Assembly (NCBI RefSeq): GCF_000143415.4
Contig: NW_003314274.1
Coordinates: 2,586,623-2,650,622 of the forward strand
DNA length: 64,000 nt
Origin: Selaginella moellendorffii
Lineage: Eukaryota > Plantae > Lycopodiophyta
Direction: 5' to 3'
The position numbers and the translations under genes were made by a program. Position 1 is the first letter of the stretch. Each line of letters begins with the position of its first letter. Below the pieces are notes generated by a model. The model did no database searches and was not told the origin of the DNA. It saw only the letters and a program-made list of their open reading frames with translations. Shown in pieces: positions 3,309 through 60,000 of the stretch.

Positions 3309-3377
3309 TAGATATTCTAAAAATGGAATATGTAATGCTGATGCCAAAATAACAAATTTAAATAAAGAGTATGATGA

Positions 3378-24053: not shown

Positions 24054-24084
<31 letters not shown>

Positions 24085-24296
24085 TTTCCTGCTAGCGATG
24101 ACTGATGCTCTCTCCCACACCCTAAAAGACATTTGAAATTTTTTATGATCCCAAAAGTCACGACTCTCCATTATTTAATCTCAACCATTAGATTTTTGGC
24201 ATATGCCCAGAATAAGCATCCCCAGCATATGCTATTATTATACTAACCCTTTCATTTAAATATGAGTACTAGCAAAAGTCCCAGCTACGCTGGGAG
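24030..24296 (-). mobile_element. Helitron head-to-tail junction (3' hairpin + CTAG fused to TACTCATATTTAAA 5' end)
   Basis: Plus strand reads aatatGAGTA|CTAGcaaaagtCCCAGCtacGCTGGG. CTAG is at 24269-24272 and the hairpin at 24280-24294. Confidence 0.75.
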
Positions 24297-30200: not shown

Positions 30201-30906
30201 TGATCCCATTTGAGGTGTTTGACAAGATGCCCTGAGCATGGTACTGCAGCGGATGCTGATGGATTGGATGGATCTGCGCCAGGGCAATGGTTAGAGTAAG
30301 GGCGTAGCCACCAAGATCCTTTGGGGCTCAAGAGCAAATCCCTGCAAATTGTGGTGACTACTGGCAGCCATCTGCTGGACAAGCTGCAATGCTGCTGGGA
30401 GAAAATATGATCAACTCAAGAACACGAAAAGAGGGATTTGTTTTATCAATGGTGCAATACTTTCTGGGAAGAGATCTCAACAATCAACAGAGCTTGTGCA
30501 CAACATATCACAAAACCAAACCGGGATGCTGAGTGAAAAATGCGTACCTTATGGCCGAAAACATGCCAAGCTTTCGCTGCTGGGCTCGATACATAAGGAA
30601 AGATAAAATAGCAGCCCAGAAAAAGAGAATTGCTTATACCAGGATAAAAAATAAACAAGGTCGGGCCCTGAATCAATCCAGGGCACATGATTCCAAAGGA
30701 GAGAGAGAGAGAGAGAGCCTTCTTGCTACCAACGCTCGTCGCTTTCCTCCCTGCCCTAAAAGCTATTTGAAATTTTTTATGATCCCAAAAGTCACGACTC
30801 TCCATTGTTTAATCTCAGACGTTAGATTTTGGCATATGCCCAGAATAAGTGTTGCCAGTATATGCTATTATTATACCGGCTCTTTCATTTAAATATATGA
30901 GTATGA
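24269..30906 (-). mobile_element. Putative complete non-autonomous Helitron (~6.6 kb) with gene-fragment cargo
   Basis: 5' TC at 30906-30905 and 3' hairpin-CTAG at 24294-24269. Shares 26964-27518 with the H1 copy. No Rep/helicase was seen. Confidence 0.6.
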
Positions 30907-31195
30907 TATGATGATGATGACAATCAAAACTTACAGAGACTCACAGCCAAGTATCCAGTGGGAAGAAAACTGCAGACCTCATAGTCATATTCCTTAGTGA
31001 GTCCATCCATGTGTATACCTCTAGAGGAAGAATTTAGACGAGCAACATGATGTTTAAAATGGAATTACCTTCAAAATTGTTCCATGGTTCTTTGATTGGA
31101 AAGTATGATCTGAAATCAACTACTGAGGTGCTCTGCAATGAAGACCTCATCAAACACACACACACACACACACACACAGAGGCGCAGAGAGACAA

Positions 31196-34100
31196 TGTCG
31201 TGAATGTGACTTCGGGTATCGAAAGATACTTGTCGACCGGTCCTTACGGGACACTCTTTCCTTACTGCCATGACGCAGGGAGGTCGGTACTGCTGGTTCC
31301 CTTTATTGGCCCCTCTTGTCCAAGTGTTAGTAAACTGGACTTAGCATCTGTATTTGGCCGGAAGAGCATAAGGACGGAATTCCTAAGTGTCTATTTGGCC
31401 AAGCATACTTGGCCCGGCTTCTTAGTTCTCTTGTGCTCTGTCTTGCACTGGCTTGGCAAGAACCCTCGCGTATTGAGACTAGTCCCTCAATATCGTTGGA
31501 TGATAGCTTACCGTGTTTGCCAAACACCCTCGCTATCATACCCTTAGTGTTGGTCTCATTTCGGTCCCATATGCTATTTATAGAAAGTGTCTAGATTTGC
31601 TCATTTGGCATATCTACAGAATGTAGAGAGTGGCCTAAACACAATGGTGTTCGTCCCGTGTCCAAATTTGCAATCTAAGGCCATTCCATATTTATGTTCG
31701 ATGCTTAAGCATGTTGTTCGATCATGAGAATTTGTGTTGAGGTGAGCCTATGTGAAGTTGTTGGTAGGAGGAAGTTGGTTGAGTCTTGAAAGTTTGCAAT
31801 CCTGGACTGAGAGTCATTCTTTCTCTAGGATGGGAAATTTTCCACAAATTTTCTTAGACTTTTCCAATGGCTGATCTATTGATCATTTTGTCCGAAAACC
31901 ATTCCGTTTTTCGAAGGCCAGTACAAACTAGTGAAGAGGTTGGAGTTGACTTTGGTTGGCTTGAACCTTAGTAAATAGTTTGTATGATGCGGCCTGAAAG
32001 GGATGCTAACTTTTGGGGCTAAGGCAATTGAGTTGGATAGAGTCTGGAGTTGGTGTAGAAAAGTGGCCGTCGCGCTTTTCTAAGAAAGGTGACTCTTATG
32101 CCTTTCTTTTGTAGCATTATGCTCGGTGGCAGGTTGCACCTTGCATTTCGCTAAGACTCTATGAGAGTAGTGAGCTCTCACTGATCTTGACTTGGTCTTG
32201 GTGGCCCTGCGCCTTGGCTAAGGATGGTGATGTCCAACTTAGTTGTTTGAGGTTGAGATGTTGGTACCCGTACTATAGCTTTGTCTATGAAGAGGTTGTG
32301 TACCAATATGAGTCCATCTCATGGTCTTCACTTTAGTTTCGACTGAGTGTTGATCATGCATAGCTAGCCTCTTCAAGGCATGCTCAGAGCTATTGACTAA
32401 ATGCATTAGTGAGCTTATTGCAGTTGAGTTGGATTCGAGTGGTCATTTAGTTTGTGCTTGTCTATGAACTTTTATCTCGTACCTGAGGTATTACGTTTAT
32501 ATTGGATGAGTATATGATTCGATGATATGAGTTTAGTGTTGAGTCTTGTGAACGCAAGTTGAGGAGTGATTGTTAGTTCTCTTTTGCGACTAGTGATTAC
32601 TTGTAGACTTTATCAAGGACCGTTGACACTTGCTTCGCTCGATGATGATTTAGCAGTGGTGGGCTTGCTTTACCGGATGGTGTTGCGGAGGATCGTGTCA
32701 TTAGGCTGGCATGGTTTTTCCATGTTGGCATGTCAATTCCTTTGTCGATATCATTTGGTTACGTTTGGTCTATAATGTTGGATTTCATTGAGTCTTGGAC
32801 GTGGTGATTCACTCCTTGAGGAAGTGTTATCCGTGACTGAGTATTGTTGAGAAATTGGTCTTGGATACTGAGTAAAGTATCTCCAACTTTGATTAGCTTG
32901 GTTGCTAGAGAGTTTTGAGTGGTGATTCACTCTTGCTTTCTGCTAGCTTTGTTCTGTTGTTGATGGCATTGAAGTGATGCCTTGTCATTGACATTATTGA
33001 GGTTGAGATTCAAAGTGAAATGAGATGTCTCTCCTTAGGATTGATATTGAGTTTCATTAGGCTTGATGAAGATAGTGTTGATGATTTGGTTGTAACTCTA
33101 TGTTATTGGCATTCATGCATTTGCTAGTTAGCAATTGTATTGACATTCAAATGAACTGAGTGGCAAGTATGAGTTAGTTGTGTTCTAGATAAGATTGTTT
33201 AGCAGGGGTTGAGCTTTAGTTTTTCCTTGAAAAGTGATTCAGTCGTGAACTATGCTAACTCTACAAGCGGAAGAGTTAGTGATCGACATTGGGAAGTTTG
33301 AATCCTTATTGGGTTTGAATTGGACTATATTGATCATTGATGATTCCCTTGTGCTTGTTCCGAAGTGAGTTATGTCTTGCTATAGATGGATTCACGGAGG
33401 ATCGTTTAGTGATCACTTGTTGAGCATAGCTCCATTGTGCTTAACTTTTGGATTGATGCAGAAATGCTCTTTATTAGCTTTGGCATTATGAAGTTTGGCT
33501 TATGGATGTGTTGAAGAAGACATTGTGGATTGCACCATAATTTCTTCTTTAGCATTGAAGTTAGCTTCTATGAGACTCGTGATCATTATTAAGCAAGACT
33601 TGGCTATAGGCTTCTTCGAGCTTTGGTTCTTTGAGTTTTATGCTCATTGTTCCATTTGTTAGAAGTTGTTGGGGAAGGCATTTTTGGCTCTTTAGCTTCG
33701 ATGTTGAAGTTAGTATTTGCATCTAGCAATCATTGGTGATGATTGACTATCATCTAGGATAATTGATTATCCTTGTCGAAGGTTTTGCTTGATTATCGTT
33801 GATGTAGAATGATTTGCTATTCTTCGGAATGGTGGATTCCTTCTTAAACGGTGATTTTGCATCTCTTTATTGATAAAATGATTGATGATCTTTCATGATG
33901 GTTAGTTGTTCTCTTTGATAGCTTATGGCTTTTTGCAATACCACATGTTCTTTGTGGTTTGCTTTGGTTTGGTCTCTGGGGCTTGAGACATCAGTAGGAT
34001 GTTGTTAACACTTGCTTAGGCAACTTGAGTTCCTTGGTGTTGTTGGCTAGGATCTATTCAGATTGGCTTTTGTGATAGTTGGCAGACATGAGAGTTTGTT

Positions 34101-35582
34101 GGTCTTACCACATTCATTCTCTTCTGTTGATTGTTGCTCGAGTTAGTTTTGATAGATTTGGATGTTATTTCCCTTGGGTGATACATTCGCGAGCATTGTG
34201 CTTGTTAGTCAATGATACTTTGTGTTCTTTGAGTTCTCTCAAGTAAGTTGTTGGCTTACTGTCTACTATCTTCGGTAGTTAAGTTTCATCATTGAGTTTC
34301 CTTGATAATATACTAGCTATTGAATGTTGTTGGATAGTGATTCCTATGTTTACCAATTATAGTGATCTTGGTGGTTCCTATACTGTAATACTAGTTTATC
34401 GGATGATAACTTATTTGGAATACTTTTGTGTTCTAATCTAAGCTATATTCACTGGTAATTAAGCTTCTCAGATATCATTGTCTCTGACTTTGATATTGTC
34501 CATTTATTGCTCTTTGAGTTTGGGCCAGTATAGGCAGATTGGCTTCGGCACTTCATGTGCATGGTGAAATCTCTAGTCATGGGGTAGCTACTGTCGACTG
34601 GTCACATAACCCGCCTCTCTATCGATGTTCCTTATTTCGGTGAAAGGGCGTGACCGTGTAAACAACTCTAAACTGCCTGTTGATAGTAGTCTATCTAAAC
34701 CTTACCGACGGGTTTGGTTTCTTTGCTCAGGAGGGTTGGGGCCTCTGGCTTCTCTCTCTATGTCTCTACGGGCAGGGGCATATCACACTTTTGTACGCTG
34801 GGTGACTCCCAGAGCAGCAAGGGTGGCTGACTCCGTTGGTCATTTCCTTGTCGGCGACGGCCGGAAGGTGTCTGAGCTGGTAGCGCATCCGCGTTAGACA
34901 AAGAGGTTGCCTCCTAACTCATTTAAGTTGGTGCATTTCTCACATAGTGTGAGTACCGTGAACTTTTTTCTGGAGTTGTTTCCTTGGCAGTATTCTAGAC
35001 TCGAGTATGCATCGACGAGGATGTCGATCTTCCCAAGGGGGGGAGAGTGTCGCGAATGTGACTTTAGGTATCAAAAGTTACCTGTCGACCAGTCCTTACG
35101 GACACTCTTACCTTATTGCCACGATGGCAGGAGGTCGGTATTGCTGGACCTTTTATCAGCCCCTCTTGTTCAAGTGTTAGTAAACTGGGCTTTGCATCTG
35201 TACTTGGCCGGATGAGCATAAGGACGGAATTCCTAAGTGTCTATTCAGCCAAGCATACTTGGCCTGGCTTTTTAGTTCTCTTTTGCTCTGTCTTGCACTG
35301 GCTTGACAAGAACCCTCGCGTATTGAGATTGGTCCCTCAATATCGCTACATGATAGCTTACCGTGTCTGCCAAACACCCTCGCTATCATGCCCTTTGTGT
35401 TAGTCTCATTTCGGTCCCAAATGCTATTTATGGAAAGTGTCCAGATTTGCTCATTTGGCACATCTACGGAATGTAGAGATCGTCCTGAACACAATGGTGT
35501 TCGTCCCATGTCCAAATTCGCAATCTAAGGACATTCCATATTTAGTAAGTTTCGAGCTTGTCCCAGAGACTAACTCCTAATA
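31196..35582 (+). mobile_element. Non-autonomous LARD-like gypsy derivative (LTR family X), left arm
   Basis: LTR copies at 31196-31694 and 35048-~35582, the second preceded by PPT AAGGGGGGGAGAG. The T-rich, stop-riddled interior has a faint integrase remnant (DIIVSDFD near 34470). Confidence 0.75.
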
Positions 35583-36421
35583 CTAAGGGAGGCTTGGGGT
35601 GAAAGCCCAAAGCGTGTGTTCCTCAAGGGGGGGGGGGCTGTGGGGGGTTCCAAATGTATAGTAGGGATAGTGGGTAGGTCGGGCATGGCCGACCAACCTG
35701 AGGCATAGTCTAGCTCCCGCTTGCGTGCCTGTCCTTGTTTTGCGTCCGGCTTGGGTCTAAGCCCAAGTTCCATTCCATGCTAGCTGGTGGAGTACCCATA
35801 CTCTCACGTTAGGCCATTGGTATGCCGAAATAGCGCCAGACTCCGTTTGGCTCCGTTTTGCGTGCTGGTCCTGGCATTGGGATGCTGGTTGCTCTAGGAC
35901 TGTTCCAAGTCGCTCCGGGCCCCTGTCCCTTCGCTCCTTGGGCTATATGCTTGGGAGTTGCTCCGTGGTCCAGTTCCATCATTCCTTGGCATCACGCTTG
36001 GGAGTTTGGCACCGTTCCTTCGTTCAGTGGCCCAAGGCCCTGAACCTCGGGTTCCTGTGGACACGTGGCATGGACACGTGGCATGTGACACGTGGCATCT
36101 GTCACGTGGCACAAAGAGGGTTTAGGTTCCGCTTCATGGTGTTATCCTATGGTAAATCACCATAGGATAAAGGGTCAAAACCACGTGCGCTACAGTTGGT
36201 ATCAGAGCAAATGGCACGGGTTCGATTCCCATTGATTAGTGGCTACTTAAAAGTATAATATACCCTTGAGCAAGGTATATTCCTACCCCTAAATTTGAAA
36301 TCGTACGTATTGGGCATCCATGCGTATGTCCTTCCTCTTGTGTGGAGTATCCACGGACGAAGGTATCCACCGTGGGACTGCGGTACGGGTGGATGACTAG
36401 TTGCCTCACATGGAATAGCTA
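35583..36421 (+). mobile_element. LTR-B + tRNA-iMet PBS + TRIM-type internal domain (chimera, left arm)
   Basis: ...GCGCTACA ends at 36194 and PBS TGGTATCAGAGC is at 36197-36208. The downstream sequence is nearly identical to TRIM interior 39644-39858. Confidence 0.85.
36062..36111 (+). promoter_or_regulatory. Four tandem G-box/ABRE motifs (CACGTGGCA) in LTR-B
   Basis: cacgtggca-tgga-cacgtggca-tgtga-cacgtggca-tctgt-cacgtggca. The same array occurs at ~5815-5864 and ~44138-44187. Confidence 0.6.
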
Positions 36422-36807
36422 TGTAAGGAACCGACTCCCCGAGATGTCGTAGGCTAAAGGATCCCTAAAAGCTTGACCAAAATGACAAAGAGTTCATCGG
36501 ATGGGACCAAGTCGAGGATCGAGTCCAAGACCGACTCTAGGACCGAGTTCGAGATAGAGTCCGGAATCGAGTCTGAGACCGACTCGGGGACCAAGTTCGA
36601 GTCCGAGTTCGAGACCGAGTTCGAGACGGAGTCCGAGATCCGAAATCGGGTCCGAGACCGAGTCCGAGGTCGAGTCCGAGGTCGGGTCCAAGATCGGGTC
36701 CGAGATCGAGTCTGAGATCGAGTCCGAGACCGAATCCGAAGTCGGATCCGAAATCGGGTTCGAGATTGAGCCAGAGACTAAGTCCAAATACTAATACGGG
36801 TCAAGGG

Positions 36808-36880
36808 CACGTGTTATCCTATGGTAGATCACCATAGGATAAAGGGTCAAAACCACGTGCGCTACATTTGGTATCGGAGC
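36808..36880 (+). mobile_element. LTR-B 3' tip and PBS (TGGTATCGGAGC) of the coding gypsy element
   Basis: ...ccacgtgcgctaca (ends 36866), tt, PBS 36869-36880, then gag. Confidence 0.85.
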
Positions 36881-37006
36881 GATTGTCTTAGTGATTCCTA
36901 TCCAACTTTTGTCGGATTTTCTGACTCAAGTTGCATACGCAGAGACTTTTCTAGTAGATCCGAAGCGACCTGTGTAGGATTAGTTGGATAGCACCATTCG
37001 GTAAGA

Positions 37007-38089
37007 ATGTTGTATGCACGTTCAGTTACTGATAGAGGCATGCATGCAGCTAGCAGGATGGTGAAGAGGAACCGTGCTGATGACGCTGAAACCTCTAGAC
37101 GGGCGAATCGAGAGGAGGAAACTCCTGCTAGAGATGCTGCGGAAGAGGCTGAGGCCAAGTTGGAAGAGGATGAGCCAAATGCTGCAGCACTGCAGCGCAC
37201 GGCTCATGAAGTCGAGATCGAGAATTTGCGAAAGGAGATTTGCAAATTGAAGAAGGAGAACAAGAAGAGGAAGAAAGAAGTTGAGGCAGCTAAACCAGCT
37301 ACGCCTAAGCAACCGGACTCCTCTTCAAGTTCTGAGGATGATGAAGTTCTGCAGCCGCCCCTGGTTGCACGAGTTTCAAAGTTCAAGCCTCCGAAACCAC
37401 CCAATTTCAGAGGCATGCGGGACTATCAGGTTTTGGAAGACTGGGTCTACGATATGGAGAACTACTTCATAGCGGCAGACGTAGATGATCGTACAAAAGT
37501 TGCGTGTGCGCAATCCTTTCTCACCGATCATGCCAAAACTTGGTGGCGCCAGGTGTGTGCTGAAAAAGGGCAGACTAGAAGTTGGACCAAGATGCGGTCT
37601 CGTATCCGTAAGGAATACTTGCCGGATGATCTTGGTCTGAGACTTCACGCAGAGCTGCGGCGGTTAAAGCAGCGAGGGGACCTTATGCATTACGTTAATG
37701 CGTTTGCTCAGAAGCGCATTATGATTGCAAATATGAGTGATGAAGATGCTCGGAGTTATTTTCTAGAGGGTTTAAGTTCATTTTCTCGCAATGAGATTTT
37801 GAAGTTTAAGCCGAAGACTTACCTGGAGTGTAAGGAGGCAGCACAGCAAGTTGCCTTTAGTCACTCGCTCATGGAACAATATCAGCAACCTTATGCTGGT
37901 AACTCGGATAAGAATAGGAATTCTGGGAATAAGCAAGGTGATCGGAAACAAAGGGTGGAAGGTAGGTACTGCCCTGGTCTCACAAGCTACGGTGAATGAA
38001 GGTGGTGGTGGTTGGAGACCACCAGCAGCTTCTTCTGGTCCTAGGCCCTCTGTTCCTCCTCCTGGTGGGTACAAGCAGCAGCAACCTGC
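37007..38089 (+). CDS. gag: Ty3/gypsy Gag (Galadriel-like chromovirus type), frameshifted near 37950 and interrupted by solo LTR D
   Basis: KPPKPPNFRG..LEDWVYDMENYF..FLTDHAKTWWR..LRRLKQRGD..YVNAF..FLEGL retrotransposon Gag motifs. Confidence 0.9.
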
Positions 38090-38319
38090 TGTGAGACAGA
38101 AATCCCTAGGCCCCAAAGTGGAGCCGGAAGGGCGCCACATGGTAGTGGCCGAAGCGAGAGCCAAACGAGCGTAACACGTTTGGACCAAAAGCTCCGACTT
38201 GAAAAGTCAAGAGCGGGAGTGGAACTCCCAACGAAGTGCTCAAGGAACGAGCACGAAGCAAGCAAAAGGCGAGGCTCCAAAAAGGGACCCAAAAGGACCA
38301 ACACATGACACGTGGGAGT

Positions 38320-39200
38320 GTCCGAAATGGACTCGAGTTGGAGTCCGAAGTGGAGTCCGAGATGGACCCGAGTTGGAGTCCGAAGTGGAGTCCGAGGTGG
38401 ACCCGAGATGGACCCGAGTTGGAGTCCGAAGTGGAGTCCGAGATGGAGTCCGAGATGGAGTCCGAGATGGAGTCCGAGGTGGACCCGAGATGGACCCGAG
38501 TTGGAGTCCGAAGTGGAGTCCGAGATGGACCCGAGATGGAGTCCGAGATGGAGTCCGAGATGGAGTCCGAGGTGGACCCGAGGTGGACCCGAAATGGAGT
38601 CCGAGATGGAGTCCGAGATGGACCCGAGATGGAGTCCGAGATGGAGTCCGAGATGGACCCGAGATGGACCCGAGATGGAGTCCGAGATGGAGTCTGAGAT
38701 GGAGTCCGAGGTGGACCCGAGGTGGACCCGAAATGGAGTCCGAGATGGAGGAGTCCGAGATGGACCCGAGATGGAGTCCGAGATGGAGTCCGAGATGGAC
38801 CCGAGATGGACCCGAGATGGAGTCCGAGATGGAGTCCGAGATGGACCCGAGATGGACCCGAGATGGAGTCCGAGATGGAGTCTGAGATGGAGTCCGAGGT
38901 GGACCCGAGGTGGACCCGAAATGGAGTCCGAGATGGAGTCCGAGATGGACCCGAGATGGAGTCCGAGATGGAGTCCGAGATGGACCCGAGATGGACCCGA
39001 GATGGAGTCCGAGATGGAGTCCGAGATGGAGTCCGAAGTCGAGACCGAGACCGGGACCGAGACCGGGACCGAGACCGAGACCGAGACCGAGATCGGGACC
39101 GAGACCGAGACCGAGGCCAAGGCCGAGACCGAGCCCTAGCCCGAGTCCGAGTCCGAATCCGAGTCCGAGTCCGAGTCCGAGTCCGAGTCCGAGTCCGGAG
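38320..39200. repeat. CpG-rich minisatellite within LTR D (12-bp GATGGAGTCCGA / 11-bp GATGGACCCGA units, then 6-bp GAGACC/GAGTCC)
   Basis: Directly visible. A related hexamer array lies in LTR C (36500-36780, 43470-43740). Confidence 0.95.
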
Positions 39201-39467
39201 CCTGAGAGGGTGAAAGCCCAAAGCGTTCGTCTCCCAGACCCTGGGGGGTTTGGTGAGCCCCAAAAGTATAGTAGGGGGAGGACTGCAGTGGAGCCAGTTT
39301 GGCCAGGAAAGGCCAGTTTGGCCCAGGAAGGCCAGACCCAGTGTTGGGTGATGAATTGACCACTGGGAAGTCCAAGATTAGAGTGAATACGGACCGACAA
39401 GCGGGGTAGCTTGGTGAAGTGTTCAAGAGCCGGCTCTAGTTCCCCCGGGAGATCGACTGGCCGATGC

Positions 39468-40144
39468 TGTAGCGCATGTGATCATGGGATGAGATTTGGA
39501 TATACTGTCACCGTGGATCCTTGGAACCTTGGGAGATAAATGGGGATAAAATAGCCACTAAGGGCTCTCTCATCAAGCAATTGCCCCTTTTCCAATTGGC
39601 TTAAGGGGAGAGAGATAAGGTGCGCTACAGTTGGTATCGGAGCAAATGGCACGGGTTCGATTCCCATTGATTAGTGGCTACTTAAAAAGTATAATATACC
39701 CTTGAGCAAGGTATATTCCTACCCCTAAAAATTTGAAATCGTACGTATTGGGCATCCATGTGTACGTCCTTCCTCTTGTGTGGAGTATCCACGGACGAAG
39801 GTATCCACCGTGGGACTGCGGTACGGGTGGATGACTAGTTGCCTCACATGGAATAGCTGGTCTACACAATGGAAGGATTGGTAGATTGAGTGCGGAAATG
39901 GAGGTGCTGGTTCCCCTTGGCTTAGTAGAGGTTGTTAGTCAATAGTCAATGAGGACATTGACATCTCTGAAGGGGGGGTGAGTGTAGCGCATGTGATCAT
40001 GGGATGAGATTTGGATATACTGTCACCGTGGATCCTTAGAACCTTGGGAGATAAATGGGGATAAAATAGCCACTAAGGGCTCTCTCATCAAGCAATTGCC
40101 CCTTTTCCAATTGGCTTAAGGGGAGAGAGATAAGGTGCGCTACA
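39468..40144 (+). mobile_element. Complete TRIM, 677 bp, 162-bp LTRs, TSD GATGC
   Basis: LTRs 39468-39629 and 39983-40144 are nearly identical (TGTAGCGCA...TGCGCTACA). PBS at 39632-39643, PPT GAAGGGGGGGTGAG, GATGC on both flanks. The empty site is visible near 5981. Confidence 0.95.
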
Positions 40145-40888
40145 GATGCTCCCAGTCCAAGTGTGGGTGGCACTACCTACTTGGATACCAGGCGTGGCTC
40201 AACGGAACCTCGCTCTAAGCCCATGGCTAGAGCACCTAAAGGCGATAAGTGGGGAGAGTACCCAGGTGGCTCGCGTAAGGCCACGGTGTTCCGAAATGTC
40301 GTCCCAAAGGCCCAGACTGTGGAAAGGAAGAGGAGCAGTCCTCTGGGGTAGTGACCAAGGACACAGTCGTGTGGTGAGGAAGTCCCAGAGGACCGTGGGA
40401 CTTAGTGGTCGGGCCTGTGGGCCTCGATCCAGTGGCAGTGTTGGCAAACACGGCCAGGGGCAGAAAGGGACTTGGTAGGAACTGACAAAGGGACTTTGGG
40501 GAAGGCAATTCCCCAGGTCTGTGGGCATCCTAAGGATGCTAAGGAGTGGATCTAGGATGACCACTCGTGGACACATGGCCCAGTCTTGGAGAGACAAGGT
40601 GGTGATGCAAGTGGTGTTGAACCACTAGTGCAGCAAAGGTGAATGGGCATGGCCTTAGCGTAACGGGCCGAGATGTCAGTGGTACCTTTGGGTGTCGGTC
40701 TCAGGACCGGACACGTGGAGCACTCGGACCAGGTGCAAGTGTTGAGTGGCATGGATGCCATTCTTGGGGCTAGCAAGTCCCAAGTCCTGAATTGGACTAA
40801 TGGAGGTTGTGAATGAGACTCCTCCAAGTGGTCCGAGGTGTGGTTAAGTGACTAAAGTAGAATGGAAAAATTAGTCGCCTACACCTGC

Positions 40889-42360
40889 AAAACCTGCTCC
40901 TAGCGGAACGGGTAGTGTGGGTCATTGCTTCCATTGTGGAGAGTCGGGACATAGGTCCTCAGAATGCCCCAACAAGCATAAGACAAGGTCTCGGGTTAAT
41001 GTCATGAGGGAAGACGGTGGTGGTGAAGCCGAGTTGGTCAATGCAGACTATGAGGAAGAAGAGGTGAGTAACTTTCGTTGCTTTCCTCAAGCTTTTCTTG
41101 TAGTCAATGCAAACACTGATCCGTTAATGTATCTGGTAGGCTTTGTCCGTGGACACCGAATCCGAGTGATGATTGACACGGGAGCTACGCACAGCGTGAT
41201 ATCCGAAGACTTAGTTAAGTTGTTAGGATTGAATGCTGAGCAAATGTCGCCTATGCACTTCCGGTTTGCGGAAGGTGGGCAAGTAGCCAGAAAGTTTGTA
41301 AGTGATGTTCCAATAAAGATATCCAAGTGGAAAGAAAGAGTGGACTTGGTAGTGTTGAAGATACCAGATTTTCAGATGGTGTTTGGTATGGATTTCTTCA
41401 ACAAGTATATAAAAGGGATTTATGGTGCTGGACAAAGTTGTATCACGTTGAAGTCAAAAGGACATCCTGATGTATCCTTTCAGTTGCAAAAGCGTTCCTC
41501 AAAAGATTGGGATGCAAAGTTCCTGACTGCGAGGGCCATTCAAAAAGCAGCTAAGAGGGGATGTCAGACCTTTTGGGTTCAAGTGATGGAAGCTGAGGGT
41601 ATTGGTGACTCAGTACGAATCGGCGACGGGGTTGATCCTGTACCAAAAAGGATATTGGAGTTGTTGGCGAGGAATCAGGATATCTTTCCGAAGGATTTGC
41701 CGCCAGGGCTACCTCCTAGCCGTGAGGTTGATCATCGGATTGAGATTATTCCGGGTTCTAAACCACCTATGAAAGCTCCATATCGGTTGAACATCAAGGA
41801 GATGGCTGAACTCAAGAAGCAACTCACGGAGCTTCTTGACAAAGGTCATATCCGACCAAGCAAGTCACCTTATGGAGCGCCGGTCCTCTTCGTTATAAAA
41901 AAGGATGGAACCATGAGGATGTGTATTGACTATCGGGCACTCAATAAGATCACGGTTAAAAACAGTTATCCTTTGCCTCGCATTGATGACTTGTTTGACC
42001 AACTCTTAAATGCTAAGTATTTTACGCGACTTGATTTGCGGTCTGGATATCATCAGATACGGGTGGCGGATCAGGATGTGGAGAAAACAGCCTTTAAGAC
42101 TCGGTACGGATCTTATGAGTTCCTTGTCATGCCATTCGGGTTATGCAATGCTCCGGCAACGTTCAGCACTATGATGGATAGAATATTCGGAGATTATTTG
42201 GATGCATTTGTCGTCCTGTATATTGACGATGTTCTAGTCTTTAGTGAAACGTTGGAGGATCATTTGAAACACTTGGAGCTGGTGTTTCAGAAATTGCGCG
42301 AACACAAACTGTATGCTAAGGAAAGTAAATGCGCTGTTGGTCAATTGCGCGTAAACTTTC
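40889..42360 (+). CDS. pol: Gag zinc knuckle - aspartic protease - reverse transcriptase, truncated before RNase H/integrase
   Basis: [62 protein letters not shown]. The frame runs into an inverted TRIM LTR after LRVNFL. Confidence 0.95.
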
Positions 42361-44670
42361 TAATACCAACTGTAGCGCACCTTATCTCTCTCCCCTTAAG
42401 CCAACTAGAAAAGGGGCAATTGCTTGATGAGAGAGCCCTTAGTGGCTATTTTATCCCCATTTATCCCCCAAGGTTCCAAAGATCCATGGTGACAGTATAT
42501 CCAAATCTCATCCCATGATCACATGCGCTACACTCACCCCCCCTTCAGAGATGTCAATGTCCTCATTGACTATTGACTAACAACCCCTACTGAGCCAAGG
42601 GGAACCAGCACCTCCATTTCCGCACTCAATCTACCAATCCTTCCATTGTGTAGACTAGCTTGTAAGCCACAAATTTTTCCTTTCCAATTTGCCAGCTTAC
42701 CTCGTCTGTCCGACCAACTCTGCCTTGGCTTGTGCTAAGTTCCCTCGCCAAGGTTCTCGCCTATGGTACCAGCTCCTACTTGGTTCTACTTGGTTTCAGC
42801 TACTCACTGCACGAGCAACGGAGTGTTAGCCATCCATCTACGGATTCCCAAATCTCTCCCAATCCCCCTCCCCGGGTTAGACTGGACTTAAGGTTCGGCT
42901 ACACTCCCCGCAGGCACAAGCAGCCAAGCACACCAAGCCTCCAGATTCCTAACACCCCTTGGTACCACAAGACTTGATCATGGGACCCTCTAAATCCCAA
43001 GCCTTGGGTGCAGCACTTGCTTCGGGACGTCGGGGCGAAACACCGTGGCCTAACGGCCCGGTATGGGTACCTCTACCCCCCCTCTTCCATCCCGAAGGGA
43101 AGGCCCAAGCCCCTGGAAGGGCAAGGACCAATGAGCCACAAGGTACTCAAGTGGGGCACCACTCCACCTGAGCCGGGAGCACCGCAGTCGGTTTCCCTTT
43201 CGGGAGTGGGAGCTGCTCTTGAGCACTTCCTTGGATGGCCCCTCCGGCACCAGCCAAGTCCATGCTCACTCCCACCCAAGGCCCCTCGGTCCCAGTCTCA
43301 ACCTCAAGTCGGTTTGGAAGCCCAACTGGAGAGTCCCTTCAAAACTGGTTCCTAGACCTCACTATCCCTACTATACTTTTGGAACCCCCTGCAGCCCCCC
43401 CCCCCCCCCCCCCCTGGGAAACGCACGCTTTGGGCTTTCACCCCTTGACCCGTATTAGTATTTGGACTTAGTCTCTGGCTCAATCTCGGACCCGATTTCG
43501 GATCCGACTTCGGATTCGGTCTCGGACTCGATCTCGGACCCGATCTCGGACCCGACCTCGGACTCGACCTCGGACTCGACCTCGGACTCGGTCTCGGACC
43601 CGATTTCGGATCTCGGACTCCGTCTCGAACTCGGTCTCGAACTCGGACTTGAACTCGGTCCCCGAGTCGGTCTCAGACTCGATTCCGGACTCTATCTCGA
43701 ACTCGGTCCTAGAGTCGGTCTTGGACTCGATCCTCGACTTGGTCCCATCCGATGAACTCTTTGTCATTTTGGTCAAGCTTTTAGGGATCCTTTAGCCTAC
43801 GACATCTCGGGGAGTCGGTTCCTTACATAGCTATTCCATGTGAGGCAACTAGTCATCCACCCGTACCGCAGTCCCACGGTGGACACATTCGTCCGTGGAT
43901 ACTCCACACAAGAGGAAGGACATACGCATGGATGCCCAATACGTACGATTTCAAATTTAGGGGTAGGAATATACTTTGCTCAAGGGTATATTATACTTTT
44001 AAGTAGCCACTAATCAATGGGAATCGAACCCGTGCCATTTGCTCTGATACCAACTGTAGCGCACGTGGTTTTGACCCTTTATCCTATGGTGATTTACCAT
44101 AGGATAACACTACGAAGCGGAACCTAAACCCTCTTTGTGCCACGTGACAGATGCCACGTGTCACATGCCACGTGTCCATGCCACGTGTCCATAGGAACCT
44201 GAGGTTCAGGGCCTTGGGCCACTGAACGAAGGAATGGTGCCAAACTCCCAAGCGTGACGCCAAGGAGTGATGGAACTGAACCACAAAGCAACTCCCGAGC
44301 ATACAACCCAAGGAGCGAAGGGACAGGGGCCCGGAGCGACTTGGAACAGTCCTAGAGCAACCAGCATCCCAATGCCAGGACCAGCACACAAAACGGAGCC
44401 AAACGGAGTCTGGCGCTATTTCAGCATACCGGTGGCCTAACACGAGGACATGGGTACTCCACTAGCTAGCATGGAATGGAACTTGGGCTTAGACCCAAGC
44501 CGGACGCAGAACAAGGACAGGCACGCAAGCGGGAGCTAGACTATGCCTCAGGTTGGTCGGCCATGCCCGACCTACCCACTATCCCTACTATACATTTGGA
44601 ACCCCCCACAGCCCCCTCCCCCCCCTTGAGGAACACACGCTTTGGGCTTTCACCCCAAGCCTCCCTTAGT
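42361..44670 (-). mobile_element. Chimeric element: LTR-B - PBS - TRIM interior - PPT - TRIM LTR - PBS stub, split by solo LTR C
   Basis: LTR-B ends at 44055 and the PBS is at 44041-44052. The TRIM LTR at 42371-42532 is followed on the minus strand by GTTGGTATTA. Confidence 0.85.
42661..43827. mobile_element. Solo LTR (family C, 1167 bp), TSD TAGCT
   Basis: TAGCT|TGTAAG...CTTACA|TAGCT (42656-42660 and 43828-43832). A truncated mirror copy lies at 36422-36807. Confidence 0.9.
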
Positions 44671-44671
44671 A

Positions 44672-47600
44672 TCAGGAGTTAGTCTCTGGGACAAGCTCGA
44701 AACTTACTAAATATGGAATGTCCTTAGATTGCGAATTTGGACATGGGACGAACACCATTGTGTTCAGGACGATCTCTACATTCCGTAGATGTGCCAAATG
44801 AGCAAATCTGGACACTTTCCATAAATAGCATTTGGGACCGAAATGAGACTAACACAAAGGGCATGATAGCGAGGGTGTTTGGCAGACACGGTAAGCTATT
44901 ATGTAGCGATATTGAGGGACCAATCTCAATACGCGAGGGTTCTTGTCAAGCCAGTGCAAGACAGAGCAAAAGAGAACTAAAAAGCCAGGCCAAGTATGCT
45001 TGGCTGAATAGACACTTAGGAATTCCGTCCTTATGCTCATCTGGCCAAGTACAGATGCAAAGCCCAGTTTACTAACACTTGAACAAGAGGGGCTGATAAA
45101 AGGTCCAGCAATACCGACCTTCTGCCATCGTGGCAATAAGGTAAGAGTGTCCGTAAGGACTGGTCAACAGGTAATTTTTGATACCTGCAGTCACATTCGC
45201 GACACTCTCCCCCCGTTGGGAAGATCGACGTCCTCGTCAATGCATACTCGAGTCTAGAATACCGCCAAGGAAACAACTCCAGAAAAAAGTTCACGGTACT
45301 CACACTATGTGAGAAATGCACCAACTTAAATGAGTTAGGAGGCAACCTCTTTGTCTAATGCGGATGCGCTACCAGCTCAGACACCTTCCGGCCGTCGCCG
45401 ACAAGGAAATAACCAACGGAGTCAGCCACCCTTGTTGCTCTGGGAGTCACCCAGCGTACAAAAGTGTGATATGCCCCTGCCCGCAGAGACATAGAGAGAG
45501 AAGCCAGAGGCCCCAACCCTCCTGAGCAAAGAAACCAAACCCGTCGGTAAGGTTTAGATAGACTACTATCAACAGGCAGTTTAGAGTTGTTTACACGGTC
45601 ACGCCCTTTCACCGAAATAAGGAACATCGACAGAGAGGCGGGTTATGTGACCAGTCGACAGTAGCTACCCCATGACTAGAGATTTCACCATGCACACGAA
45701 GTGCCGAAGCCAGTCTGCCTATACTGGCCCAAACTCAAAGAGCAATAAATGGACAATATCAAAGTCAGAGACAATGATATCTGAGAAGCTTAATTACCAG
45801 TGAATATAGCTTAGATTAGAACACAAAAGTATTCCAAATAAGTTATCATCCGATAAACTAGTATTACAGTATAGGAACCACCAAGATCACTATAATTGGT
45901 AAACATAGGAATCACTATCCAACAACATTCAATAGCTAGTATATTATCAAGGAAACTCAATGATGAAACTTAACTACCGAAGATAGTAGACAGTAAGCCA
46001 ACAACTTACTTGAGAGAACTCAAAGAACACAAAGTATCATTGACTAACAAGCACAATGCTCGCGAATGTATCACCCAAGGGAAATAACATCCAAATCTAT
46101 CAAAACTAACTCGAGCAACAATCAACAGAAGAGAATGAATGTGGTAAGACCAACAAACACTCATGTCTGCCAACTATCACAAAAGCCAATCTGAATAGAT
46201 CCCAGCCAACAACACCAAGGAACTCAAGTTGCCTAAGCAAGTGTTAACAACATCCTACTGATGTCTCAAGCCCCAAAGACCAAACCAAAGCAAACCACAA
46301 AGAACATGTGGTATTGCAAAAAGCCATAAGCTATCAAAGAGAACAACTAACCATCATGAAAGATCATCAATCATTTTATCAATAAAGAGATGCAAAATCA
46401 CCGTTTAAGAAGGAATCCACCATTCCGAAGAATAGCAAATCATTCTACATCAACGATAATCAAGCAAAACCTTCGACAAGGATAATCAATTATCCTAGAT
46501 GATAGTCAATCATCACCAATGATTGCTAGATGCAAATACTAACTTCAACATCGAAGCTAAAGAGCCAAAAATGCCTTCCCCAACAACTTCTAACAAATGG
46601 AACAATGAGCATAAAACTCAAAGAACCAAAGCTCGAAGAAGCCTATAGCCAAGTCTTGCCTAATAATGATCACGAGTCTCATAGAAGCTAACTTCAATGC
46701 TAAAGAAGAAATTATGGTGCAATCCACAATGTCTTCTTCAACACATCCATAAGCCAAACTTCATAATGCCAAAGCTAATGAAGAGCATTTCTGCATCAAT
46801 CTAAAAGCTAAGCACAATGGAGCTATGCTCAACAAGTGATCACTAAACGATCCTCCGTGAATCCATCTATAGCAAGACATAACTCACTTCGGAACAAGCA
46901 CAAGGGAATCATCAATGATCAATATAGTCCAATTCAAACCCAATAAGGATTCAAACTTCCCAATGTCGATCACTAACTCTTCCGCTTGTAGAGTTAGCAT
47001 AGTTCACGACTGAATCACTTTTCAAGGAAAAGCTAAAGCTCAACCCCTACTAAACAATCTTATCTAGAACACAACTAACTCATACTTGCCACTCAGTTCA
47101 TTTGAATGTCCATACAGTTGCTAACTAGCAAATGCATGAATGCCAACAACATAGAGTTACAACCAAATCATCAACACTATCTTCATCAAGCCTAATGAAA
47201 CTCAATATCAATCCTAAGGAGAGATATCTCATTTCACCTTGAATCTCAACCTCAATAATGTCAACGACAAGGCATCACTTCAATGCCATCAACACCATAA
47301 CAAAGCTAGAAGAAAGCACAAGTGAATCACCACTCAAAACTCTCCAGCAACAAAGCTAACCAAAGTCGGAGATACTTTACTCAGTATCCAAGACCAATTT
47401 CTCAACAATACTCAGTCACAGATAACACTTCCTCAAGGAGTGAATCACCATGTCCAAGACTCAATGAAATCCAACACCACGAACTAAACGCAACCAAATG
47501 ATATCAACAAAGATAGAGTCGACATGCCAACATGGAAAACCCATGTAAGTCTAACGACACGATTCTCTGCAATACCATCCGGTAAAGCAAGCCCACCTCT

Positions 47601-50378
47601 GCTAAATCATCATCGAGCAAAGCAAGTGTCAACAGTCCTCGACAAAGTCTATAAGCAATCACTAGTCGCAAAGCAACTAACAATCACTCCTCAACTTGCG
47701 TTCACAAGACTCAACACTAAACTCATATCATCGAGTCATATACTCATCCAATATGAACGTAATACCTCAGGTAAAAGATAAAAGTTCATAGACAAGCACA
47801 AACTAAATGACCACTCGAATCCAACTCAACCGCAATAAGCTCACTAATGCATTTAGTCAATAGCTCTGAGCATGCCTTGAAGAGGCTAGCTATGCATGAT
47901 CAACACTCAGTCGAAACTAAAGTGAAGACCATGAGATGGACTCATATTGGTACACAACCTCCTCATAGACAAAGCTATAGTACGGGTACCAACATCTCAA
48001 CCTCAAACAACTAAGTTGGACATCACCATCCTCAGCCAAGGTGCAGGGCTACCAAGACTAAGTCAAGATCAGTGAGAGCTCACTACTCTCATAGAGTCTT
48101 AGCGAAATGCAAGGTGCAACCTGCCACCGAGTATAATGCTACAAAAGAAAGGCATAAGAGTCACCTTTCTTAGAAAAGCGCGACGGCCACTTTTCTACAC
48201 CAACTCCAGACTCTATCCAACTCAATTGCCTTAGCCCCAAAAGTTAGCATCCCTTTCAGGCCGCATCATACAAACTATTTACTAAGGTTCAAGCCAACCA
48301 AAGTCAACTCCAACCTCTTCACTAGTTTGTACTGGCCTTCGAAAAACGGAATGGTTTTCGGACAAAATGATCAATAGATCAGCCATTGGAAAAGTCTAAG
48401 AAAATTTGTGGAAAATTTCCCATCCTAGAGAAAGAATGACTCTCAGTCCAGGATTGCAAACTTTCAAGACTCAACCAACTTCCTCCTACCAACAACTTCA
48501 CATAGGCTCACCTCAACACAAATTCTCATGATCGAACAACATGCTTAAGCATCGAACATCTTTGCCCATATAACCGACATCCAACACTGACATCTGCAAA
48601 GTGCAAAATGAACATCCAAGGCTTGATCACGAAGACCACATCTTTGGATATCCACATTGCACTAACACTCTTCTTCAATCGCCTTTAAGATCTAATGTGA
48701 AGCCGAAACATTAAGAAAAATGACATGGAAAATCAAGGTCCAAGGAAAATTCCTCATCACTTGAAATAACAATGCCACTTCCACTAACACAAGTGTTAGT
48801 GATGTCAATGCCCCAACTACACATCTTCTCCGTCCAACAATCTACTCCAAATGCTAATGGTTCAACCGACAAGTCATAGCAAGTGAATGCTATAACCCTT
48901 TTCCAACACCTAATGGGCAAACTCAAGGAAACAAGGTACCAACTTAAGCTTAGCATAATGGACCATCTTCGAGAATTCAGTCAAAGCTACTACAATGCTA
49001 CTTCGTGCAAGTAGACTTAGCTTCTCCATCAACCACTTTGGGGTTGATCATCATTTAACCAAGCAACTTCGTAAACACATTGCTCATTATCACATGGATA
49101 TGATATAGAAATCACAATGACTTGATCATCGATTGAGCAACACCACGAGCAATGCCAATGTCATTACTTCAAAGGTTTATGTGAGTATCAAGTGCCAATT
49201 CAATTCGACAAAATGCAACATAAATGCCACTCCACCAATAGAGATTTACAACACCCAACATCGCTAACTTTTGTTCACAACACGGACAAGCTCATGCCAC
49301 TCTCTTTCCGACCAAACTCAACACTAATCCAACACCAAGCTACTCAAGGAGCAATAGCAAGGTTCCCCGGAAAAGAATTGAGCATTGCAACCCAAGTCTT
49401 CCAATAGCAAGCTTAGACAAAATGGTTTAGCGCTTCACCGCTATCCATCCCACAACTCACTATTGTAAAACCACCATCTCCAACATGCATTAAGATAGGG
49501 ACTCTTGAGTGCATGATGTGAATACAAGCAATGAGTTAACACCTCATTGCAGATCATCTCTCCAAGAAGAGAAAATGATTTACATATTTGATCCTTCGTC
49601 CCCGATGACTCTCTTTTCGGTCTCATCTTTGACCAAACCTCAAGCTTGCTTTCGCACTGCCTTCAGTTCAATCGAAGAAAAGTTTATGAGAAAGCACAGC
49701 CATGACTACTTGAACCAATAGACTAATCCCTATAGTCTTAATTGTTCCACTTATAATCATGCCTAGGAAGGATCCACTAGTGCCGTGCTAAACAGCTACG
49801 AACCAGCCTATTTGATAGTAGTCTATCTAAACCTTACCGACGGGTTTGGTTTCTTTGCTCAGGAGGGTTGGGTCTCTGGCTAAATATGGAATGGCCTTAG
49901 ATTGCGAATTTGGACATGGGACGAACACCATTGTGTTCAGGCCACTCTCTACATTCTGTAGATATGCCAAATGAGCGAATCTAGACACTTTCCATAAATA
50001 GCATATGGGACCGAAATGAGACCAACACTAAGGGTATGATAGCGAGGGTGTTTGGCAGATACGGTAAGCTATCATCCAGCAATATTGAGGGACTAGTCTC
50101 AATACGCGAGGGTTCTTGCCAAGCCAGTGCAAGACAGAGCAAAAGAGAACTAAAAAGCCAGGCCAAGTATGCTTGGCCAAATAGACACTTAGGAATTCCG
50201 TCCTTATGCTCTTCCGGCCAAGTACAGATGCTAAGTCCAGTTTACTAACACTTGGACAAGAGGGGCCAATAAAGGGAACCAGCAGTACCGACCTCCTGCC
50301 GTCATGGCAGTAAGGAAAGAGTGTCCGTAAGGACCGGTCGACAAGTATCTTTCGATACCCGAAGTCACATTTGCGACA
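44672..50378 (-). mobile_element. LARD-like element (LTR family X), right arm
   Basis: LTRs at ~49781-50378 and 44672-45204 with PPT. It carries 48559-49880, which is missing from the left arm. Confidence 0.75.
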
Positions 50379-50383
50379 GACAA

Positions 50384-50638
50384 ACACACACACACACACA
50401 CACACACACAGAGAACCTTCCCGCTAGCGATGACTGACATTCTCTCCTTGTGGTCATCCCCCCTAAAAGATATTTGAAATTTTTTATGGTCCCAAAAGTC
50501 ATGACACTCCATTGTTTAATCTTAGCCATTAAATTTTGGCATATGCCCAGAATAAGTGTCCCCATCATATGCCATTATTATATCAGCTTTTTCATTTAAA
50601 TATATGAGTACTAGTAGAGATCCCAGCTTTGTTAGGAG
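50384..50638 (-). mobile_element. Second Helitron head-to-tail junction
   Basis: aatatatGAGTA|CTAGtagagatCCCAGCtttGTTAGG, with CTAG at 50611-50614 and a degenerate hairpin. Confidence 0.7.
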
Positions 50639-57005: not shown

Positions 57006-60000
57006 AGCGAGCAAGCATGACAGGGAAATTGACACAAACATGACAAGGAAAAGAAAGAGTACACATACCTCAAGTGGTCATTGGGGAGAGAGCAACAGGA
57101 GTGGCAGGAGACCGGAGTTGTGCTGTGTAGCATTTAAAAGGCTGAAAACAGAGGTGAGGCATCAGACACCAAGAAAAAGAAGAAAAAAAACAAAAACAAA
57201 AGAATGATCAAAATCAGCGAATATGAGGAAAGTAAGAAAATCATAAATTCAGTGCGGATGACGTTACCTGCTGACAAATCTCGCAAATGGTGTTCTCTTA
57301 TCCTTATTCCCAGTGGCTACATTGGAAACCAAGAACTATTCCAAGTTGCAGTGCTCCTGGCCTCATGGGANNNNNNNNNNNNNNNNNNNNNNNNNNNNNN
57401 NNNNNNNNNNNNNNNNNNNNNNNNNNNNNNNNNNNNNNNNNNNNNNNNNNNNNNNNNNNNNNNNNNNNNNATCGTATGTGAATCAAGCAGCTAGAGCTCC
57501 AGAAGATTCTTTGTATTGTGCAATTTGAATGAACTTGAACTTGTACTGAAGTTTTATACATAGAACAAGATGCACACTTCACAGGTATAATGCCTTGCTT
57601 GCTGTGTCCTTAGTGTGCTACATCACGACTTTTTTTTTCTTGGGATATCTGTGTAAGTGATTCAATCCTGCTTATCAAGATTGCGAGATCAATCTCTTCT
57701 TTATCATGAGCTCACTATCTCTTAGCATCTCTTTTTCTGCTATCTTCGTGCATCGTCAGGTAACAACATTTTTTCTGCTGAGTATGAATGATTTTTTGTT
57801 TTTGTTCCAGCTGAATGGGCGCCTGCTACCTGCTTTAGTGATAGTGCTCTGCTGCATGTAATTATGCTACAGTGCATTGTCAAGTGAGCTGTGAGACTAC
57901 AATTGAATCAGAGTGCCCATGCTTGTCATGGGAATGGCCACCACACTTATCTCCGTGATATATTCTATGGACTCTTTGACTACTTTCCTGTCACTGGCAG
58001 CTCCTCCTCGCAAGGAAGGTAACATTAGAGTGACTTTGTGAGTTTTTCTACTCAATTCTTCTTCCAGAAGCCCCTTGCAACCTTTGCTCTGAAGGAGAGA
58101 TTTCAAAAACAGTAACAAACTAAGCAGCACTGGATCTGAGCACGACTTCCACGAAGCAAAGAAGCCGTCCCAGCACCGTCCTGTCACGTACATCTACTCA
58201 TTCTTTTATCTCTTGCAAGCATATACTCGGCTATGTTGCTCACCAGACTGGAGACAAGGATGCTATCGACGTTGGCTAGCCTTCAAAATGGGTCCGGATT
58301 GGCACAATGTGGTTCACAGCGGCACTATACATTTGGTTGCTCATAGCTCCACTCATTCTTCCAGATTGAGACTTCTTCTAAGCGCATGCAAAGTAAGCTC
58401 GAGTTTATTATAATGTAGTGTTGTAAATTTGGAAAAGAAATTAAAAGTCTTTGGTTGGAAACAAATTAAGAGCTTCCACCATGGATCTAGTGTTGCAGAT
58501 TGATTGTGAGAACTTTGGAGCATCTGCATGGAAGAAAAGCAAACGAATGAGGAACAAAAACTGATCAAGTTTTTCTTTGTTTTTACCTTGTTCTCCTGCA
58601 TAGATGGGGATCTCATACAGCTTTTTAGATGCCATGCCTCTAGAAGCTCGTACACATAATCATCTTCAACCTGTGACATCACACTGTCAGAACAAACACA
58701 CCCCCTAAAGGTGATAAGAGCTTATGTTTATGAGACGAATGGATCATGTGGACAGTATGGTCAAAAGGCTACTTGCTGGTGCTGCAGCGGCAGTGGTGGA
58801 TGCTGAGGTTACGGAGGTGTCACAACCATAGCTGCTGCTAGTTCTTCATAAAACCTGTTGATCAAAGATCATCCTCAACACACTTCTTTTCAGCTTTTTA
58901 ATTACCTCACATAACACTGATTGTCTAAAGAAGTTTGTTTTTTTATCAATTCCAGGATAGTCTCCAACATTAAGGAACTTATCCTATATCCTGTGGTCAA
59001 CTTCTTGAGGTCTCTGCTTGGAATTTTGGAATTTTGGGGTCAATTTCTTGGTTTTGCCACTTTTGTAGGTACCATGCTTCATCAAAATCTATAGTTTGAA
59101 CTAAAGGCTTCCTTTCTGTGGAGCACTGTCTTTAAGATTGTGGGTATAGGGATATTCCCATATATGAAGTCTTGGAAAATTACCATTTCCTTTGTCCAGA
59201 AATCCCAAATCCACCTTTAGAAGTATCACTTGATTTCTTTTGTGAAAATGTTTTTTAAGCATATATTTTATAAAGGTGGGAATATATTGATATTTTAAGT
59301 AGACTTAGTATATTTAAGAAAATTATGTAAATTTTTTATGGATCTTCAAATAAAATATAAGATTAATATAAAATAAATAGATTATAATAATATAGAATGA
59401 AATATAGAAGAATGATGGTGAAAAGTTTTGAGGGATTTCCTTCATAGTGGGTTTAGTATTCTTCAGATTCATAGAGAAGCTAATTGAGTTTTTTCTTGGA
59501 TGTAATTTTTGTTAATTAAAGCATATCACTGTTGATTACAATTAGTTATACAACACTACCACTAAATCAATCTAGTAAGAAATGTTAAGAATAAACATAT
59601 AAAATATTATTATTATATTCATAATAAGATCTAAAATTTTTAAAAGAGCATTGTATTAAGAATAAACGCTTTAAACCCATTACTAATCCATCAAAAATGA
59701 ATGTCCAAAGATTGTAACAGTAACTAAAAAAAAGAAGTGAAGCTAATGTGCACAAAGAAATTGAAGTAGTGCATTTGGAGTTTGTTAATTCTTGAAGTGT
59801 TATTACAATTAGTTAGTGAATCTGACTAATACATTATTGACACTAAATAATTTAATGAAATTTTTAGCAATTATTTTGATACACAATTATATACTCATGT
59901 TGATTAGATGTCACTACTTTTAGTTTACCTGGCTATTTAGTTTTCTTATTTCTTTTTCCTTTATTTCTTCATCTTTCAAATGCCAAAGGTTTTGGAGAAA

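Follow-up and report, generated by a model that had tools for sequence, protein, structure and literature searches.

An inverted pair of LTR retrotransposon ends within a single 5-bp direct repeat bounds a 19-kb foldback in Selaginella moellendorffii

Complex insertions of long terminal repeat (LTR) retrotransposons within a single target-site duplication (TSD) have been described by Sabot and Schulman 2007 (PMC1950507). The joining of two U3 ends from two donors by retroviral integrase is established in vitro, according to PMC2857682 and its references 28 and 30–33. In DNA transposons of the Ginger types, duplications are made by a gypsy-integrase-like enzyme and measure 4 bp in Ginger1 and most Ginger2, 5 bp in TDD-4/5 and 6–8 bp in GingerRoot, the last of which is found in lycophytes and bryophytes (PMC2836005, PMC6839031). 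Here, we analyzed a 19.2-kb foldback in the lycophyte Selaginella moellendorffii, located in a 64-kb window (the whole stretch of DNA that was analyzed) of contig NW_003314274.1; all positions are numbered within this window. The inverted, identical LTR ends of the foldback and its single 5-bp duplication suggest that an integrase once joined two identical ends. Our leading explanation, to which we give somewhat less than an even chance, is that this 19-kb block of dead retrotransposons is the scar of an aberrant integration and not a working element.

Outer boundaries and insertion site

The left outer end of the foldback reads ...GAGAGACAA|TGTCGTGAATG and the right outer end ...CATTTGCGACA|GACAAACAC. 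Both termini are complete starts (U3) of one 499-bp repeat, LTR-X, in opposite orientation (TGTCG...CGACA). An earlier reading of the window, made from the sequence only, had proposed that the same LTR-X end forms both outer termini in inverted orientation, and this is borne out by the four LTR-X copies, all of which start at an identical TGTCG. The direct GACAA repeats that it had described on either side were also recovered: the 5-mer, a putative TSD, occurs once per 60-bp flank and precisely abuts the LTR edge (left copy, 31191–31195; right copy, 50379–50383). Two random 5-mers of the window would be identical with a probability of 0.0013. When we searched the 64 kb for TG..CA ends accompanied by a 5-bp direct repeat, allowing ±8 bp of slack, the only inverted pair was that of the foldback.

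The foldback interrupts a dispersed repeat, a putative Helitron according to the sequence-only reading, of which the window holds four copies (3065–3313, 24054–24286, 30669–30915 and, as the interrupted copy, 31100–31195 plus 50379–50628). The copies near 3065 and 24054 are uninterrupted, and another lies just upstream at 30669. The left flank stops where the paralogs at ∼3065 and ∼24054 read TGCTCTGCAATGAAGACC.CATCA.(CA)n, and the right flank picks up at (AC)nAGAG.ACCTTCCCGCTAGCGATGA; stop and restart are neighbouring positions of the repeat, in line with the colinear resumption that had been claimed from comparison with these same paralogs. The (CA)n/(GA)n tract of the repeat is highly variable in length, and at the insertion site it contains two near-identical CAAA(CA)nGAG stretches ∼45 bp apart.

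Anatomy of the arms and the centre

The self-comparison for which the sequence-only reading had called, run as a self-BLAST, recovered two inverted arms, the left one on the plus strand (31196–36807) and the right one on the minus strand (43442–50378). Together with a repeat search, it resolved them into two pairs of inverted blocks, 31196–31694/49881–50378 (96.4% identity) and 31694–36807/43442–48559 (97.56% identity over 5120 columns). Aligned to each other, the arms show 136 mismatches and 5 gaps (97.6% identity), one of the gaps being 1322 bp long. They thus mirror each other for more than 5.5 kb, as had been stated, though their lengths are unequal (5612 bp on the left, 6937 bp on the right). 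The foldback region is free of N runs, the nearest ones lying at 19137–19236 and 57371–57470.

Each arm carries a copy of an element, X, with direct LTRs and a polypurine tract beside its 3′ LTR, as in a canonical LTR element; the 19-kb unit as a whole does not have this form, its outer LTRs being inverted rather than direct. In the left arm, the outer LTR-X (31196–31694; 499 bp, from TGTCG to CCATATTTA) is followed by a non-coding internal region (31695–35047), which terminates in the polypurine tract AAGGGGGGGAGAG (35035–35047) directly abutting the inner LTR-X (35048–35544). In the right arm, read on the minus strand, the outer LTR-X (49881–50378; 96.4% identical to its left counterpart) is followed by a non-coding 1.32-kb segment present in this arm only (48559–49880), a leader that the left arm lacks, then by the internal region (45205–48558) and the inner LTR-X (44707–45204). 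All four LTR-X copies end in ...CCATATTTA, which makes the repeat a non-canonical TG..TA type whose 3′ terminus is TATTTA and not CGACA. The outer and inner copies are 89–92% alike (∼10% divergence) and differ at shared positions, and LTR-X therefore falls into two subtypes, 'outer' and 'inner'. The flanks of X are likewise unmatched, with GACAA upstream and GTAAG, not GACAA, downstream instead of a matching 5-bp TSD. X in this locus is chimeric, being made of two LTR subtypes, and has unmatched flanks.

X is a non-autonomous, high-copy LTR family. We found no open reading frame (ORF) of note in its internal region and no TGG-type primer-binding site (PBS) after either outer LTR-X, and sequences of the X and gypsy families occur in extremely high numbers in public contigs. 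A homology search with one LTR-borne ORF yielded no match in collections that do not hold this genome, and Rfam gave no match within 30500–51000.

Past the inner LTR-X, each arm continues with 1.26 kb of a Ty3/gypsy-type array located 3′ of X (35545–36807 on the plus strand; mirror copy, 43442–44706 on the minus strand). In the left arm, this flank consists, in order, of a satellite tail, a poly-G polypurine tract, an LTR (LTR-Y) that extends to 36194 and ends GCGCTACA, a PBS (TGGTATCAGAGC, 36197–36208) 3′ of LTR-Y, which we take to be of the tRNA-iMet type, a leader, a 12-bp satellite (36517–36785) and a tail. X was formerly inserted in a gypsy satellite. What was duplicated in inverted order is X with its 3′ flank; the 5′ flank of X is absent. 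Since reverse transcription of X would give identical LTRs and no flank, the arms must have been copied as DNA, and the combination of GACAA/GTAAG flanks with the gypsy-array 3′ flank in both arms marks them as copies, made at the DNA level, of an X that had earlier become nested at another place.

Arrays of the 12-bp satellite (GTCCGAGATGGA and relatives, up to 61 copies) were observed at 38320–39200, 36517–36785 and 43471–43744, and long ORFs cross the satellite in several frames. That it lies, in gypsy-type elements, between gag and the polypurine tract indicates that it is part of the 3′ region of the element and spread with it. We also observed the order internal region, polypurine tract, LTR, PBS, internal region at 35545–36420 and, reversed, at 42363–42660. 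Here, elements share one LTR, as in tandem or complex arrays or in copied one-LTR circles.

Between the arms lies an asymmetric centre of 6634 bp (36808–43441). Beyond the equivalent of position 36807, the right arm runs on with GTGAAAGCCCAAAGCG. The same continuation was present, among the contigs listed, in 10–14 contigs each of three public runs (X1–X3) and in one contig of a fourth (X4), and this recurrence identifies it as the canonical family structure. At 36807/8 the left arm switches to a stub made of the last 58 bp of LTR-Y (36808–36865), after which comes a PBS; this is a locus-specific break. The centre then comprises a gag ORF (37007–37999; Retrotrans_gag, E 2e-12), the 12-bp satellite (38320–39200) and a polypurine tract, an LTR (LTR-W) split by a nested element resembling a terminal-repeat retrotransposon in miniature (TRIM) (∼39262–39467 and 40150–40874), a truncated CCHC-protease-reverse transcriptase (RT) segment (40917–42362; RVT_1, E 2e-37), a reversed TRIM fragment (42363–42660), and a reversed, diverged LTR-W' with a polypurine tract (42661–43441). 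The best matches of the protease-RT ORF were plant Ty3/gypsy proteins (40–65% identity). Gag and the truncated CCHC-protease-RT are the only coding pieces, and neither integrase nor RNase H is encoded in the unit. Exact-protein look-ups with the gag ORF and two junction-spanning ORFs gave no match in collections without this genome. At least three joins fall outside transposon ends (36807/8, 42362/3 and 42660/1), and a fourth illegitimate join probably lies near 40875.

The TRIM-like element in LTR-W (39468–40144, plus strand; 677 bp) is young. Its 162-bp LTRs (TGTAGCGC..GCGCTACA) are 99.4% identical over a 163-bp aligned pair, its PBS is TGGTATCGGAGC and its polypurine tract GAAGGGGGGGTGAG. 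It is flanked by the TSD GATGC (39463–39467 and 40145–40149), and its empty site is found in a paralogous host LTR (5981–5985). The leader is 97% identical to the one after LTR-Y (36185–36420). This element shows that the target duplications of LTR integrases in this genome measure 5 bp. Elsewhere in the window, we observed a 217-bp tandem repeat at 1926–2805, of whose four copies three are 97–100% identical and the fourth ∼61%.

The arms are duplicates of one progenitor. At 32659, 33287, 36516, 36574 and 36767, both carry the same minority base relative to the family majority in public contigs, and such private variants common to both arms point to a single template. The differences between the arms are strongly clumped (dispersion index 3.65, p ∼2e-18): there are none in the 400 bp from 31696 to 32095, 37 in the 400 bp from 32596 to 32995, including transversions and multi-base changes, and 17 in the 200 bp from 35796 to 35995. 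The outer LTRs differ at 18 positions in 499 bp, next to 0 in 400 bp of adjoining internal region. Base composition accounts for little of the clumping (rho ∼0.3). This patchiness could be due to ectopic conversion or template switching among family copies, or to misplaced repeat reads. Strand-coordinated hypermutation in the divergent blocks was not supported, as A/G versus C/T counts track G:C content, and is also disfavoured by the transversions and multi-base changes. The extra 1.32-kb segment sits exactly between the last base of the right outer LTR and the shared internal sequence. Its first 100 bp (49780–49880) recur inverted within X at 34650–34750 and 45502–45602 with 90% identity, and the homology ends at the same first base, which is the LTR/leader boundary. 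This hints at an older inverted join at the LTR edge in the X family.

Possible origins of the foldback

The explanation we favour has two steps. In the first, the integrase of an LTR retrotransposon would have joined two U3 ends of X to one staggered 5-bp GACAA target. The source of these ends could have been a pair of cDNA molecules or one cDNA dimer joined tail to tail (snap-back), either of which would yield inverted LTRs within a single TSD. In the second, the facing inner ends, or an unstable palindrome centre, would have been repaired by homology-directed copying: a single ectopic X copy, lying within a gypsy-type array, may have been invaded by both ends, with synthesis passing through its 3′ LTR and on into the flank. 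As both would copy the same template in the same direction, the result would be an inverted duplication of the 3′ part and the flank. The new tails would be identical and not complementary, so closure would need further template switches or end joining, and the extended ends closed in this way would leave a patchwork centre.

The action of an integrase, its substrate (two ends or a dimer) and the pathway of repair are all inferred; within the model, the integrase step is the firmer part and the repair route the weaker. Two complete U3 termini, a 5-bp stagger and a colinear target are together the product of an integrase that pairs two U3 ends, and that much of the earlier claim of a one-event insertion stands: the junctions are best read as insertion through two identical LTR ends. 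The other half, the arrival of all 19.2 kb as a ready-made unit, does not, as the arms contain LTR subtypes diverged by 10% and chromosomal flank, neither of which reverse transcription of X could have produced. The centre with its several illegitimate joins and the arm indel of 1.32 kb flush with the LTR edge speak against it as well. It is this interior, unlike cDNA in its diverged subtypes, chromosomal flank and illegitimate joins, that favours a two-step origin. The model explains the chimeric LTR subtypes, the divergence step at the LTR edge and the LTR-flush indel. A divergence of ∼10% between outer and inner LTRs next to 2.4% between the arms would fit a fusion between the cDNA of one subtype and a template that belonged to a different one. 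A right arm that is family-canonical past 36807, a left arm with a locus-specific break and the clustering of illegitimate joins in the centre also fit.

Several points weigh against this explanation. The target is a microsatellite: because the insertion point falls in the (CA)n/(GA)n tract, which differs among copies, the paralogs do not give the exact sequence of the empty site, and we infer its expected form as (CA)nGAGGCGCAGAGA-GACAA-(AC)nAGAGAACC, with one GACAA. A junction check in public runs met low-coverage Logan contigs with a depth of zero on the unique left flank, and no junction was confirmed by a read or a second assembly. In a test with 78-bp k-mers across the right junction, the sole match was a microsatellite word found in unrelated organisms. 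The literature that we searched documents no case in which an LTR-retrotransposon integrase carried out same-end integration in vivo; queries on inverted LTRs with TSD, on Ty1 inverted dimers and on U3–U3 integration returned DIRS and unrelated papers only. The proposed donor copy of X was not found in a comparison limited to the window. The TG..TA 3′ end of LTR-X is non-canonical, and its integration chemistry is not fully understood. Finally, nested insertions and deletions predating a duplication could have produced the centre, and ectopic gene conversion or misplaced repeat reads, instead of template switching, could lie behind the patchy divergence.

An unlikely alternative, suggested in the sequence-only reading, is that a palindromic unit pre-formed at another locus was carried here as DNA in a single step by a transposase of the integrase type acting on inverted TGTNR ends, which would amount to a Ginger-like transition from LTRs to terminal inverted repeats (TIRs). 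The TGTCG...CGACA ends with their 5-bp duplication agree with this, and Ginger, TDD and GingerRoot show that integrase-like enzymes can move TIR-bounded DNA (PMC2836005, PMC6839031). However, no integrase or transposase ORF was found in the unit, only gag and the truncated protease-RT, and the 64-kb window contains no second copy. GingerRoot ends, moreover, are mostly TA..TA with duplications of 6 bp. Excision of chromosomal DNA is, to our knowledge, not among the activities of LTR-retrotransposon integrases.

We consider it similarly unlikely that the interior or the whole of the foldback is an artefact of assembling high-copy repeats, as when both haplotypes of a single X locus are placed in opposite orientation between LTR junctions that are themselves real. 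The public assembly of Selaginella moellendorffii contains two haplotypes ∼98.5% identical, a value near the 97.6% between the arms. The great abundance of the X and gypsy families would favour such an error, the divergence blocks are about the size of Sanger reads, and no read support was obtained. On the other hand, the region has no gap, the 1.32-kb arm indel is clean, the arms continue differently on their inner sides, and both junction sequences must exist in reads. The two outer flanks are unlike each other and together complete a single repeat unit, so the arms do not represent one locus that entered the assembly twice, and a haplotype misjoin is ruled out as the whole explanation.

Quite unlikely, in our view, is an integrase-free rearrangement in which transposable element DNA, captured or copied by fold-back, came to fill a break in the microsatellite, GACAA and the exact LTR edges being due to chance or to fill-in of a staggered break. 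The several illegitimate joins in the centre are what such repair could leave, inverted arms around a spacer resemble the fold-back inversions described in PMC7467729, and the flanks share the longer CAAA(CA)nGAG direct repeat. Yet three coincidences would be needed, namely a breakpoint at the first base of an LTR on each side and a 5-bp repeat unique in each flank. Furthermore, the stretch that separates the left (CA)n from the LTR, GAGGCGCAGAGAGA, has its match in the paralog at ∼3065 and is thus target sequence, not filler. A ∼32-bp duplication of CAAA(CA)nGAG with filler was ruled out for the same reason, the supposed filler being the sequence that matches this paralog.

The sequence-only reading had also offered another course, in which the element first inserted normally and a template switch at the short TGTCG/CGACA terminal repeat then copied the left end onto the right. 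This has a next to negligible chance, as nothing beyond the inverted ends themselves speaks for it, its premise is false (all four LTR-X copies end CCATATTTA, without CGACA) and no homology-driven step turns a normal ...TATTTA|GACAA into CGACA|GACAA. Recombination, inversion or conversion between inverted X copies was ruled out on the same ground, since TATTTA|GACAA cannot become CGACA|GACAA, and inversion of the left junction as the source of the right one would bring TTGTC, not GACAA.

Returning to the proposed integration scar, the junctions, if real, are evidence from a genome that two identical ends can be brought together in vivo by an LTR-retrotransposon integrase. Products of this kind escape standard transposable element annotation because LTR finders require direct repeats. 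Same-end integration would create long inverted repeats in one step, and from such repeats hairpin RNA and chromosome fragility readily arise. The unit today would be inert DNA; its complementary arms could give a hairpin RNA with a 5.6-kb stem only if read-through transcription occurred. Same-end events would also provide starting material for an evolutionary step that has been proposed, in which LTR elements gave rise to integrase-type TIR transposons. It is very doubtful that LTR integrases in this lycophyte genome recurrently insert through identical ends (U3/U3 or U5/U5), with some of the units re-mobilised as TIR DNA elements and the foldback as a member; if it were true, it would be a living LTR-to-TIR transition of the kind from which Ginger-like transposons have been proposed to originate. 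We saw no evidence for the foldback as a new mobile element.

Comparison with known systems

DIRS elements, like the foldback, are retroelements with inverted terminal repeats; they rely on a tyrosine recombinase, contain an internal complementary region and lack a TSD. The foldback shares none of these three traits: we found no tyrosine recombinase ORF in the unit, it has no internal complementary region, and a 5-bp direct repeat is present. Fold-back inversions share with this locus the inverted arms, the asymmetric spacer and illegitimate central joins (here, 36807/8), but they lack transposon-end boundaries and a TSD, whereas the outer boundaries of the foldback fall exactly on LTR termini with a TSD.

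Ginger1, Ginger2-TDD and GingerRoot have TGTNR or TG..CA inverted termini, as does the foldback with TGTCG...CGACA. In contrast, their TIRs are 40–270 bp long, and they encode a transposase without RT and are multicopy, while the 'TIRs' of the foldback are whole LTR elements plus flank, it has no transposase and one copy is known. Its 5-bp duplication is typical, among the Ginger types, of TDD-4/5 only. By the tests that we ran, with no transposase and one known copy, the foldback is not of the Ginger type.

Two-donor same-end integration by retroviral integrase resembles the origin proposed for the foldback in that the enzyme attaches identical LTR ends to a staggered target and leaves its characteristic short duplication. 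That product comes from test-tube assays, as cited in PMC2857682, whereas the foldback is a genomic locus; in the literature searched, no plant LTR retrotransposon was reported to have left such a product in a genome. The complex LTR retrotransposon insertions (PMC1950507) are, like the foldback, composites of more than one LTR-element sequence within one TSD and are attributed to aberrant replication or integration. Theirs are direct and share an LTR, whereas the foldback is inverted, has U3 at both ends and carries chromosomal flank in its arms. The complex tandem LTR insertion in one TSD is the closest described product to the foldback.

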